From assembly GCA_033442325.1 (NCBI GenBank), contig JAWQFM010000028.1, forward strand, positions 703,329-750,928: a stretch of 47,600 nucleotides of DNA. The letters run 5' to 3'. This DNA is from Salpingoeca rosetta. Taxonomy: Eukaryota > Protista > Choanoflagellata. Within the stretch, counting starts at the first letter, position 1, and each line of letters opens with the position of its first letter. Below, one piece after another: positions 870 to 14,029 of the stretch. The position numbers were made by a program, and so were the translations under genes. Below the pieces are notes generated by a model. That model had not been told where the DNA came from, searched no databases, and saw only the letters and a program-made list of their open reading frames with translations.

Positions 870-3800
870 TCATCTCTTCTTCAGTGGCGACGCCTGTGAA
901 AAGTCGATGGAGCCAACCTGCACGCACATGTGTTTGCGTTGTCCGCACATTCAACGTGAGCCAACCGGCGAGTACAAAACGCGGCGTCTGCACATGTCTT
1001 TGGACAATTTGCACCACATACAGACACTTGACCACGATGACACTCAACACAATGCAATGGAACGCAATGTCCCGCCATAAAACCACACACCACCACCATC
1101 CACCATCATCCACCATCATCATCATCACCATCATCATCACCTTGTTGTTGTGCACGCGCTCGGCCTGCGCCTCTGACAGCTTCCGGGCCACTTCCTCTTC
1201 GCTGTCCATCAGGGAATTCCTGACGCTCGTCTCCGCCTCTCCATCACCGTCATCATCATCAATCGGAGTGCCATCCTGTTCATAGAGAGAGTGTGTGATG
1301 GCAACATGGGCTGTTATTGAGCGCGAAGGAAAGAAACGTCGCCGGCATACAGCAGCAGACAACACACACAAACACACACACACACACAAATGCACGCACG
1401 CATGCACACAAACACACATATCCATGACACATACACACGCACGCATGCACGTATGCATGCACGTATGCACACACACATGCACACACACACACATACACAC
1501 AATCCCCTCACCGCCCTGCGACCCATCACGAACAGCTGCGCCGTACCTCTGTGCCGCGAAGGATGCGCAGGTACTCGTCTGCCTCCTCATCGTCAATGTC
1601 GTTGTACTCCGGCTGCCAGTCGGCGAGCGGGTCGACAGGGTGCGGCGTCATGTACTCCCGCGGCTCAATGCTCGTCTGGCTTGGCTTGCGTGGCAGCACT
1701 GGTGGTGGTACGTGGTGCGGGTGGTTCGTGCTGCCCTGCTGGCGACGCTGGTCGTTGCGTCGCAGCGTTGGGCGCGGGTTCATGAGGGCAGAGGGGTTGA
1801 CGGGAATGCCGTAATTGAGCGAGATGTCACGGTTGACCGCCGCCTGCGTGTGTGCGTCTGCATACATGACAGCGGACGCGCCAACAGCACTTCGCGTTGT
1901 CGTTGGCGTTGTTGACGTGGACGTCGCCGTTCCTCCGTTGCTGTTGGAAAACGCAACATACTGATGTGGATGTTGTTGTTGCTGCTGTTGTTGCTGTTGC
2001 TGTTGCTGTTGGTGCAGGTGCTCTTGGCTGCTACCCAGCGGTCTGTTTGTACGGATCGTTGTCCACGGTGACGATCGCGTGCTCCCATCACGGCTCGCAT
2101 GTCCGCTGCCACCACCGCTCCCGCTGCCGCTGTGCCCGCTTGGGACGGACCCAACGTTGCCCGCGTATGTGGGGTTGGTCCGCATGCTCCCCCCATTGCT
2201 GCTGGTGCTGCCGTTGTTGCCATTGCCGTAGCTGTGCCTGCTGGTGTCAGACGGCGTGCGGTGGTGCTGGCGGTGATTCGACGACGACACGCGGCGCTCC
2301 ATCGTCTCCATCGCAAACGTCATCGGCTCAACCACTTGCAGGTCTGTATCAAGTGCACCAAGAGAGATGTGGAAGTTGTTGGACGGGGTGAGGAACATGG
2401 CGAGCATGGGATGGCGCGTGACGGGTTTCAGCAGGATGGATCATAAGATAAAAATCAAACGCATGAACACACACACAAACACACACACGACGCATGCACA
2501 CACGACGCACGTACGTGATTTCCGCCTGCGTGCGACCCCGCTGCCACCGCCACGGCAGTAGAGATACGTGGCGATGGCGATGACAAGAGCAAGGGCAGCA
2601 GCGAGTCCAATGACGGCGGGGAGCGGAACAGCGGCGGCGGCGCTGGTGCTCGGCGAACACGAACCCGTACTGGAGGCATCCGTCAGCCGCTCAAAGGTGC
2701 TGGGCTGTGATCGGCAGTGGCATTGGGAAGGGGGGGGGTGTCAGAAACGGTGCTTCAATGGAATGGAAGTGGAATGGATATGGGATGGAATGGAAATGGG
2801 AGGCAACTTGCTGACACACACACACACACACACACACACACACGTATACACGCACCACACGCACCACACGCACCACACGCACGTACACACGCACCACTGT
2901 TGCGAGGGAGGCGATGGCACCCGTGTCTGCGCTCTGTTTGAGCCGCGTGACCACATCCTCCAGCGGCGGGCCGTTGCGTGTCGTGAGGTTGCCCGTCACA
3001 ACCACACTCCCCGGTGCAAACGACACGACAATAAACGTCTGTGTACCCGTGGTTGTGTCCTTGTACAGCGATTCTACCGCCGTGGACACCCGTGAAGACA
3101 GCGACGCAAACGGAGCGGATTTCGCGTCCGCCAGCTCGGGCGTAAACGTGTCTGGCAGCTTAAACTGCACGCGCGCAACCTCCAGGGGGCGTGTCGTTGC
3201 GTTTGGTTGCGTAAAATACTGCGGGCTGATGTCGCTGATTGCGTCAAGGCCGCCCATGATGGTGACAGTCAGCACCACGCGGTACGGGGTGAGCGGCGCG
3301 AGTTGCGTCACGTTTGTTGTGCGCGTGCTCACGGCAGGTGTCAGCGTTTGCACCAGCACACTGCTTCCATCGTACACCTGTGGCAAGCGGAGGAGAGTCG
3401 ATGCGTGAAGGTGTGTGTGTGTGTGTGTGTGTGTGTGTGTGTGTGTGTGTGTGTGTGTGTGTGTGCAGATGTGTGCAGATGTGTGCCAGTGTGTAGAGGT
3501 GTGTGAGCGGCGTGTGCACTTGGATCAACCCAACATATGCAAATCTAATCAAACAACCCCCTCCGCCCCTCTTCGCCCCCGTCTTTCTGAAATGGACGTG
3601 GCGCAGCTGACCTGGATGGTCTGGTTGACGAGCTGTGTCGCTGTGGCTGCATCAAGCTCCCACCGCAGTGTCAAGGCGTCAACACCCGCGCGAACGAGCA
3701 GCGGATAGGCCGGTGTTGGTGGCGGTGCACGCGCTGTCGTCACGGTGATGGCGTCGCTCAGGGGACCCGCCCCTGCCGCGTTCCATGCACGCACGCGGTA

Positions 3801-12800: not shown

Positions 12801-14029
12801 CACACACACACACACACACACACATACAAGCACACACACGCACACACACACACACACGCACACATCTCACCCTGAGGTTTGACTGGGTGACGGCAGCGCC
12901 GCCACAGCGCAGCTGATCGCTGCCCGCAACGAAGATGGTCCCTGTGTTGCGGTGATCCGTGTCTGCGACAGGGGAACCAAAACAAGAACCACGAGTGTTA
13001 GCACGATGCGTGCGTGCGCGGGGTGTCTGGGTGAAATGAAGTTTCTGCAACCAGCAACCAACGTCGGTGTAGGGGCTCTGCACCATCCGGACACACACAA
13101 CCAAACACACACACACACACTCACACGCATGCAGTCACATGTGATACGCACAGCTTTCGCTGCCGTCGACGCTGGAGAATGTGTAGTTGGACGACATGTC
13201 GCGAAGCAAGTAGCCTGCAAAGAGTCGGAGGCGTGCACGTGAGTTCAACAAGGCGGCAGCAACAAGCTGTGGAAGCAGAGGCAGGATGCATGACCAGGTT
13301 GATTGCTGCCGCACGCAGCCACGCCATGGTTGCTCCACCTATGATGGCATCGTCGCGCTCCGAAGTGGACAGCACAACTGCGGCAAACACACGCACCCGC
13401 ACATATTGGTAGGGGTGAGTGGCACTGCAGCAAGGAACACCACAGTGAAACGGGCACACCACCGCACCACCGCACCATGCGTCACCACCACGCATCACCC
13501 AGTCTTACAGTCGTAGGTGTGGTTTGGGAAGAAGTGCGTGACACGGTAGGAGGTGAACTCCCCATACACGTCAAAAGTGACTGGCAGTGCATCAGGCAGG
13601 GCTGTGATGGCTTGCCCATGGTTGGCAGGGACCAGGCCATCGCTGCACGCGGACTCTGGCGCCCCGACACCGAACGCGTTGCACGGGTTCGTCTGTCGTG
13701 TGTGTGTGTGTGTGTGTGTGTGTGTGTGTGTGTGTGTGTGTGTGTGTGTGTGTGTGTGTGTGTGTGTGTGTGTGTGTGTGTGTGTGTGTGTGTGTGTGTG
13801 TGTGTGTGTGGCAGCGAGCACGGCAGCACAAGCGCGATGAGAACCAGCATCGAGCACGTGAAGGAGGGACAAGCGTGCGTTCACGCACACACACACGCAC
13901 GGCGACCAACCAACCAACCAACCAACCAACCTGTAGCAGCGAGATGAGAAGCAGCAGCAGCCGTGGCAGCCGCAGCAGCCGTGGAAGCAGCACGACCACG
14001 GGTGTCGCACCACCAGCAGCCATCATCAT
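870..14029 (-). CDS. Multi-exon semaphorin-like single-pass receptor: signal peptide, N-terminal extension, Sema, PSI, ~7 FN3, Thr-rich linker, SEA, TM, long cytoplasmic tail
   Basis: Start [33 protein letters not shown] (14029-13931, followed by a GT donor). Sema motifs [22 protein letters not shown]...[12 protein letters not shown]...[11 protein letters not shown] and FYAAF...[31 protein letters not shown]3 motifs [97 protein letters not shown]. Likely last exon 917-870 ([15 protein letters not shown]). Introns are GT-AG. Confidence 0.88.
2895..3190 (-). other. Juxtamembrane SEA domain
   Basis: [28 protein letters not shown]...[15 protein letters not shown] matches the SEA pattern (F...L.d..S..F..L...v...FrpGSVVV). 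Confidence 0.85.
8240..8410 (-). other. PSI domain
   Basis: [35 protein letters not shown]...NW has the canonical PSI cysteine spacing. Confidence 0.93.
8410..12010 (-). other. Sema domain-encoding exons (approximate limits)
   Basis: Exon ~10257-10086, [58 protein letters not shown], matches the semaphorin signature VYFFFxE...SRVARVCKxDxGG...FLKARLxC. Confidence 0.88.
9199..9331. repeat. Intronic GGAA/GGAC-type purine tandem repeat
   Basis: Repeats of ggaa/ggacaa units. Confidence 0.9.
13698..13810. repeat. (TG)n microsatellite; reads (CA)n at the 3' end of intron 1 of the Sema gene. Representative of dozens of such arrays in the window
   Basis: Perfect dinucleotide run ending a few bases from the acceptor (..cacacgacag). 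Confidence 0.97.

Follow-up and report, generated by a model that had tools for sequence, protein, structure and literature searches.

The window analysed here is a stretch of 47,600 nucleotides from the choanoflagellate Salpingoeca rosetta (assembly GCA_033442325.1, contig JAWQFM010000028.1, positions 703,329 to 750,928; contig C28 of the 68 contigs, 55.4 Mb in all, that served for our own-genome profile searches). Positions 870 to 14029 of this window carry a large gene that we read as the one encoding the semaphorin Sema-FN1. The coding span lies on the minus strand, with its start ATG at 14029 and its stop codon at 870, which are exactly the bounds that an earlier note on this DNA, made from the letters alone and giving no strand, had assigned to a semaphorin-like gene. 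Its roughly 2,050 codons are spread over about 33 exons, and translation of the minus strand gives, in order, a signal peptide, Sema-like blocks, a Cys-rich PSI domain, FN3-like blocks, a SEA domain with GSVVV, a transmembrane segment and a long low-complexity tail. A plus-strand reading of the same span was also tried and rejected in favour of the minus strand, as its open frames arose only from the translation of dinucleotide repeats. All domain and similarity searches with the S. rosetta gene were done one exon at a time. The features of the gene are the following (E, expect value).

870 to 14029, minus strand: whole coding span of Sema-FN1, from ab initio exon chains, which in the N-terminal half were corrected by comparison with the published sequence, and with collinear orthologue tblastn and profile matches.
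13931 to 14029, minus strand: exon 1, with the start ATG and a hydrophobic signal peptide (by translation).
12597 to 13692, minus strand: Reeler-like module, on exons 13692-13509, 13377-13339, 13214-13152, 12962-12871 and 12704-12597.
8399 to 12460, minus strand: Sema domain, on exons 12460-12352 to 8776-8688, ending in the first part of exon 8491-8127.
8276 to 8398, minus strand: PSI domain (Pfam PF01437, E 7.7e-11; plexin/semaphorin profile, E 5.7e-17).
3180 to 8222, minus strand: array of seven FN3 repeats on about 12 exons, spans approximate.
8222-7692, minus strand: FN3-1.
7454-6681, minus strand: FN3-2.
6499-6022, minus strand: FN3-3.
5791-5250, minus strand: FN3-4.
5046-4670, minus strand: FN3-5, divergent, with a Gly-rich insert.
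4204 to 4399, minus strand: exon in which FN3-5 ends and gives way to a Thr-rich, mucin-like linker, containing a single Cys and with RGD after it, between FN3-5 and FN3-6 (by translation).
3989-3720, minus strand: FN3-6.
3700-3180, minus strand: FN3-7.
2967 to 3173, minus strand: SEA domain (Pfam PF01390, E 4.1e-6; score 27.3 bits, the cut-off being 26.4).
2997 to 3020, minus strand: intact SEA autoproteolysis motif, FAPG/SVVV (by direct translation).
2555 to 2629, minus strand: single transmembrane helix in the translation of exon 2704-2515, with a short Ser/Thr-rich stretch before it and an Arg/Lys-rich stop-transfer sequence after it.
1534 to 2343, minus strand: large cytoplasmic exon, low-complexity and Ser/Gly-rich, with a run of 12 Gln, NPTY and an acidic YLRI; acceptor uncertain.
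870 to 1310, minus strand: final pair of exons, at about 1310-1141 and 917-870, carrying a conserved C-terminal motif and the stop codon.

Exons were chained ab initio; the N-terminal half was then set against the published S. rosetta Sema-FN1 protein, and the later half was re-run with repeat masking, which added 16 more exons, one of them cytoplasmic and 810 nucleotides long, and brought the model to the stop codon at 870. The verified exons of the N-terminal half, all on the minus strand and given from high to low positions, are these.

Exons 1 to 6, minus strand: 14029-13931; 13692-13509; 13377-13339; 13214-13152; 12962-12871; 12704-12597.
Exons 7 to 12, minus strand: 12460-12352; 12081-11922; 11764-11596; 11339-11238; 10867-10783; 10494-10408.
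Exons 13 to 17, minus strand: 10257-10086; 9749-9457; 9098-8943; 8776-8688; 8491-8127 (3' end of the last alternatively at 8085).

The phases across these exons close without a stop codon. Since 669 codons precede the PSI exon, PSI falls at about residue 700, matching its place in the Hartaetosiga gracilis orthologue, and in the Savillea parva protein too it stands at about that residue.

The gene had already been published, and had been correctly read from the sequence by the earlier note. Choanoflagellate semaphorins with FN3 and SEA domains were described by Junqueira Alves et al. in 2019 (Sci Rep, PMC6374515) and 2021 (Genome Biol Evol, PMC8011033), who named them Sema-FN1 in S. rosetta as well as M. 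brevicollis, and counted one plexin per genome, so the remark in the earlier note that such proteins had been reported from choanoflagellates was right, the class being called Sema-FN. The gap-stripped row Srose_Sema-FN1 of the published alignment (File S2, PMC6374515) proved identical to our exon translations from about 13152 to 8222, at every junction between exon 4 and the point where PSI ends, the sole difference being three residues (IAD) that stand before the first PSI cysteine and are missing in the row. This match fixes the splice sites of the N-terminal half and identifies the window as the S. rosetta Sema-FN1 locus, whose protein is listed as XP_004990163 (Table S1, PMC6374515). The architecture published for the Craspedida, namely signal peptide, Reeler, Sema, PSI, seven FN3, a Ser/Thr-rich domain, SEA with G/S[VI]VV, a transmembrane helix and, near the C-terminus, a conserved motif, CMC (PMC8011033), agrees with ours, in which the Reeler is putative, as does the Sema-PSI sequence. 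What our analysis adds to the published gene is the exon coordinates, a 39-nucleotide microexon among them, and the failure of the Pfam Sema and Reeler models on it. This predicted microexon (13377-13339, minus strand) lies upstream of the point where the published row begins; it has AG/GT borders and adds 13 residues, and we included it on the basis of collinearity with the Hartaetosiga and Savillea proteins, because it is needed to keep the N-terminal module collinear with the orthologues.

The introns of the verified half are rich in (GT)n/(CA)n and measure 124-370 nucleotides. In the 13 introns with borders fixed against the published protein (8688-13930), tracts of (GU)n of at least 5 units occur on the sense strand in 8, mostly 10-50 nucleotides past the 5' splice site; in several cases the donor itself reads GTGTGT. 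Long (AC)n tracts are present in two of the 13 (56 and 36 units) and end 6-8 nucleotides ahead of the 3' splice site; intron 1 holds tracts of both kinds.

Relatives were collected with the PSI exon. The search of a large representative protein set returned no self-match, the best match being a 203-residue metagenomic open reading frame with 56% identity, and the relatives in which PSI is followed by FN3 arrays were P0008, P0105, P0064, P0066 and P0055. Two of these are complete open reading frames from transcriptomes: P0008 is the Hartaetosiga gracilis protein EP00056_P010895, of 1754 residues, and P0105 the Savillea parva protein EP00038_P008036, of 1618 residues. By tblastn, residues 19 (at 13689) to 1736 (at 1141) of P0008, which run from the GAPxSxC motif to the C-terminal motif, align collinearly with the window at 27-55% identity per exon; this protein too begins with a signal peptide followed by GAPxSxC. 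The Savillea protein is collinear over its Sema, PSI and FN3 parts. Acanthoecid Sema-FN proteins of the Savillea type have been described as carrying five FN3 domains and no SEA (PMC8011033). Two further sequences, P0001 and P0153, come from ENA metagenome contigs of about 1 kb and are open-reading-frame calls that read through introns around the PSI exon of the 56%-identical relative; their first residues are a (CA)n-type translation, and at the other end they extend past what is apparently the same AG|GTGCG donor after the start of FN3-1. An uncultured close relative seems to have the same PSI exon border, and repeat-rich introns as well.

One stop-free exon (8491-8127) carries the end of Sema, PSI directly after it and the start of FN3-1, and this bears on whether two adjacent genes might have been wrongly merged, one for a secreted Reeler-Sema-PSI protein and another for an FN3-SEA-transmembrane protein. 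Such a merger would be conceivable to the extent that the exon ends past 8127 were called ab initio. However, PSI and the first FN3 strands share that unbroken exon, the complete transcriptome open reading frames of two other choanoflagellates hold the whole architecture in one chain, and it is taken as one protein in the NCBI model as well as in the papers of 2019 and 2021 (PMC6374515, PMC8011033). We give the two-gene alternative hardly any weight and, as judged from the shared PSI/FN3-1 exon and the orthologue frames, the locus is most probably a single gene.

The Sema domain was examined with a profile, A1, made from three N-terminal regions of Sema-FN relatives. Searched against the PDB sequences, it matched 34 chains, all of them semaphorins, plexins or poxvirus semaphorin mimics, and these included chains without PSI (Sema3A 1q47 at 6.6e-7 and A39R at 1e-4). 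On the exons of the window its matches were collinear, the strongest at 10264-10082 (8.9e-17), 9712-9479 (5.6e-8), 11709-11593 (5e-6) and 11363-11232 (8e-6). A second profile, built from 26 plexin and semaphorin heads with the Sema-FN family left out, recognised exon 10231-10076 at 3.1e-5 and PSI at 5.7e-17. When the Sema-FN set, including the exons of the window, was compared with the plexin/semaphorin set by hhalign after PSI had been stripped from both sides, the two aligned over 195 columns with 98.0% probability (E 1.6e-13). Finally, an AlphaFold model of residues 225-760 of the Hartaetosiga orthologue reached a mean predicted local distance difference test score (pLDDT) of 79.6 and a predicted template-modelling score of 0.86, and its best Foldseek matches were Sema1a, Sema6A and Sema1b (E 6.7e-24 to 1e-22, template-modelling scores 0.62-0.71), with plexins below them. 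On this profile, profile-profile and modelled-fold evidence the Sema domain is real, though divergent.

The same matches address a second alternative, that the gene encodes a receptor of the plexin or Met kind instead of a semaphorin. A Sema-PSI head with a single transmembrane helix is indeed what plexins and Met have, and plexins are among both the profile and the fold matches. In the ranges listed for A1 against the PDB, however, the central blades are covered only by semaphorins and poxvirus mimics, the plexin matches being confined to the last blade and PSI, and semaphorins rank above plexins in the fold search. Neither IPT/TIG nor RasGAP (Plexin_cytopl) nor kinase domains were matched by Pfam in any exon or in the tail, as the earlier note had said, and the only strong Plexin_cytopl match of the genome lies on another contig (C6). 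As far as the sequence tells, the plexin- or Met-like alternative is refuted, and we regard its chances as practically nil.

The signal peptide is separated from Sema by about 190 residues that are collinear with the orthologues. A profile of the orthologues matched the exons of this module with E values of 1.9e-9 (the first of them), 0.05 and 0.0016, and the alignment shows the motifs GAPxSxC..HG, GYLLRD and RAP..W; motifs in this alignment fit the Reeler consensus. In a look-up of ESM features, the look-alikes listed for the orthologue N-terminus were all Reeler clusters (0.87, with 194/256 features in common), and exon 2 alone gave no usable match. These look-alikes are a lead and not proof; the name Reeler for the putative module follows the published description (PMC8011033).

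The part following Sema largely bears out the order given in the earlier note, PSI and then seven FN3 repeats, SEA and a transmembrane helix, and the profile check that it had proposed gave Pfam matches for PSI (7.7e-11), fn3 (3.5e-9 and 1.2e-7) and SEA (4.1e-6). The two fn3 matches (PF00041) lie at 6027-6218 in repeat 3 and at 3741-3974 in repeat 6, respectively, and a weak one (0.11) at 7691-7945 in repeat 1. A profile made from the six Pfam-positive FN3 repeats of the Hartaetosiga protein found repeats 1, 2, 3, 4, 6 and 7 in order on the minus strand. FN3-5 was recognised by no profile and was placed by collinearity with the Hartaetosiga orthologue, whose fifth repeat is likewise Pfam-negative. 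That orthologue also has a Thr-rich stretch at the place equivalent to our mucin-like linker, and a Ser/Thr-rich domain has been described in Sema-FN (PMC8011033). The RGD that follows the linker in exon 4399-4204 may have arisen by chance. The intact FAPG/SVVV of the SEA domain agrees with the cleavage motif given as G/S[VI]VV (PMC8011033).

The cytoplasmic tail, of about 330 residues in S. rosetta versus about 150 in the orthologues, is the least conserved part of the protein. In its stop-free stretch of 304 residues (1529-2440), Pfam at E<=1 found no domain except a chance match to Glypican (0.69). Its NPTY (2165-2176, minus strand) has a counterpart, NPSF, in the Hartaetosiga tail and none in Savillea or the metagenomic homologues, and may be there by chance. 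At the extreme end, RNSLMD..KL followed by VDFS..SP is common to S. rosetta, the Hartaetosiga protein and a metagenomic homologue (the C-termini of P0008 and P0064), and residues 1706-1736 of P0008 are 48% identical by tblastn to the terminal exons of S. rosetta. The small terminal exon, 917-870, is supported by the conservation of this motif. The motif was also sought in the S. rosetta plexin locus, where only chance-level matches were obtained, so that its reported likeness to the plexin C-terminus was not confirmed. The Reeler-like module, the Thr-rich linker within the FN3 array and the C-terminal motif are all missing from the earlier note.

We then looked at the rest of the genome. Contig C6 carries the only strong match to Plexin_cytopl (5.6e-103), with a PSI match 3.4 kb upstream on the same strand, and a weak, sub-threshold one lies on C11; a second Sema-FN locus was not found in the genome by the Sema-FN profile. 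The genome thus has one semaphorin and one plexin, in agreement with the published count. Sema-FN1 has been reported to be expressed in all life stages, 2-3-fold more in colonies and swimmers (PMC8011033).

With great confidence, then, we explain this stretch of the window as the S. rosetta Sema-FN1 gene (XP_004990163), which encodes a type-I membrane semaphorin. Its structure and domains, its agreement with the published protein and the existence of one plexin gene were shown directly, whereas self-cleavage, dimerisation, plexin binding and any signalling are inferred. Several results weigh against it. The Pfam Sema model (PF01403) gave no match on the genome locus, on read-through stretches or, at E<=10, on trimmed exons, and nothing significant on full-length or cut orthologues (best 0.035). 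When individual Sema exons were searched by phmmer against the PDB, the outcome was either nothing or three semaphorins at E values of 0.7-1.5, suggestive but short of significance. The fold model is that of an orthologue about 30-50% identical and not of the S. rosetta protein, and the alignment behind it held plexins and semaphorins, which may bias the fold. For the N-terminal module, Pfam Reeler matched neither the orthologue N-termini or exon 2 at E<=10 nor the read-through stretches with the other N-terminal exons at E<=1, a profile search of the PDB with the module found nothing relevant, and AlphaFold modelled it with low confidence (pLDDT 44.8). The splice junctions of the FN3-to-tail half all come from ab initio calls only, and some of the exon ends are uncertain (8127/8085, about 7034, 5596, 5250, 3555 and 2343). 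No experimental test of Sema-FN1 binding, cleavage or function was found in the literature searched. The Pfam failure also qualifies what the earlier note had said of a clear Sema signature: the domain stands by the profile and fold tests, but the Pfam Sema model finds nothing. The note had added that the idea would fall if the Sema HMM did not hit; taken literally this is what Pfam returned, but profiles and the modelled fold establish the domain nonetheless, and that demand was therefore too strict.

How Sema-FN1 might work can be proposed from its parts. After removal of the signal peptide, the protein would expose its Reeler-like module together with the Sema propeller of seven blades, which the PSI knot caps, and this head would be carried on a long stalk in which the seven FN3 domains are interrupted by a Thr-rich hinge that could be glycosylated. 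The SEA domain, with its intact G/SVVV, most likely cleaves itself while folding, after which the ectodomain would be held non-covalently and could detach when pulled by a mechanical load. Homology with animal semaphorins makes it most likely that the Sema domain forms dimers. Its most likely partner is the Sema domain of the genome's only plexin (Plexin-1), and binding would activate the cytoplasmic GTPase-activating protein (GAP) domain of that plexin and so change the cytoskeleton. The motif at the end of the tail, which the Sema-FN1 proteins of choanoflagellates have kept, may serve as an anchor or for reverse signalling. The term semaphorin-family receptor used in the earlier note is right as to the family but loose as to receptor: by homology Sema-FN1 would be on the ligand side of the semaphorin/plexin pair, with reverse signalling through the tail a possibility.

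It could also be that a genuine Sema-FN1 acts mainly without plexin, as an adhesion or mechanosensing receptor that signals inward through its own tail and meets other ligands, such as homophilic contacts, the extracellular matrix, or bacterial ligands bound by the Reeler, FN3 or mucin parts. This alternative, which partly overlaps with the explanation that we prefer, would account for a tail of such length with NPTY, YLRI and a C-terminal motif conserved in other choanoflagellates. It would fit as well with a SEA domain and a mucin-like linker, the layout of mechanoprotective mucins (PMC8011033), and with the residue analysis in which the plexin-semaphorin interface was poorly conserved (PMC6374515). 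However, the same genome has a plexin whose cytoplasmic GAP domain is intact, semaphorin and plexin occur together in 16/22 choanoflagellate species (PMC8011033), and the tail on which inward signalling would depend is poorly conserved, with NPxY/F not seen in Savillea or the metagenomic homologues. We therefore hold a mainly plexin-free role to be unlikely, and keep the plexin-binding semaphorin as our explanation of the locus.

A more speculative scheme is a two-way signal released by tension. When the stalk is pulled, in rosettes or during attachment, the two halves of SEA would part, the Reeler-Sema head would be shed onto the Plexin-1 of neighbouring cells and the stub left behind would signal inward via the NPxY-type and C-terminal motifs. 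In the published papers a SEA 'breaking point' is raised solely as a guard against membrane rupture (PMC6374515, PMC8011033). We think this two-way scheme quite improbable; if it were true, it would be a mechanically gated cell-cell signal, working in both directions, that predates animals.

Among animal proteins, the class 1 and 6 semaphorins (Drosophila Sema1a, 6qp9; mouse Sema6A, 3okw) share with Sema-FN1 an N-terminal Sema propeller with PSI in a type-I membrane protein. Sema1a and Sema6A are the best structural matches of the orthologue model and also the best profile matches over blades 3-7. In contrast, they lack the Reeler, the FN3 stalk and SEA, are only about 15% identical, and have proven plexin binding, which for Sema-FN1 is predicted. 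With SEA mucins of the MUC1 type the protein has in common Ser/Thr-rich stretches and a SEA domain that lies next to the membrane and bears the self-cleavage motif G/SVVV, whereas the rest of Sema-FN1 is unrelated, SEA being only a module in it and its cleavage here a prediction.

With semaphorin-plexin signalling in choanoflagellates, a system by which animals guide their cells would have arisen before multicellular animals did, a point already printed in 2019 and 2021 with this very gene. The gains of the present analysis are the exon map and the Pfam blind spot: as the Pfam models miss the Sema and Reeler domains of the Sema-FN family, domain censuses based on Pfam would undercount pre-animal semaphorins. 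S. rosetta is now genetically tractable.

As for the surroundings of the gene, a (CT)72 microsatellite (202-345) lies directly downstream of the 3' end of Sema-FN1. On the other side, a 495-codon open frame with no Pfam match (14820-16307, plus strand) stands head-to-head with the Sema-FN1 start, about 800 nucleotides apart. Farther along, 30820-37239 and 38191-40251 on the plus strand hold a large gene with matches to PH_BEACH (6.1e-12) and BEACH (3.6e-23 and 3.8e-58) and WD40-type matches; by these domains the neighbour at 30820-40251 belongs to the BEACH-domain proteins like neurobeachin and LRBA. An open frame at 44502-45533, also on the plus strand, matches DUF5074 at 4e-9.

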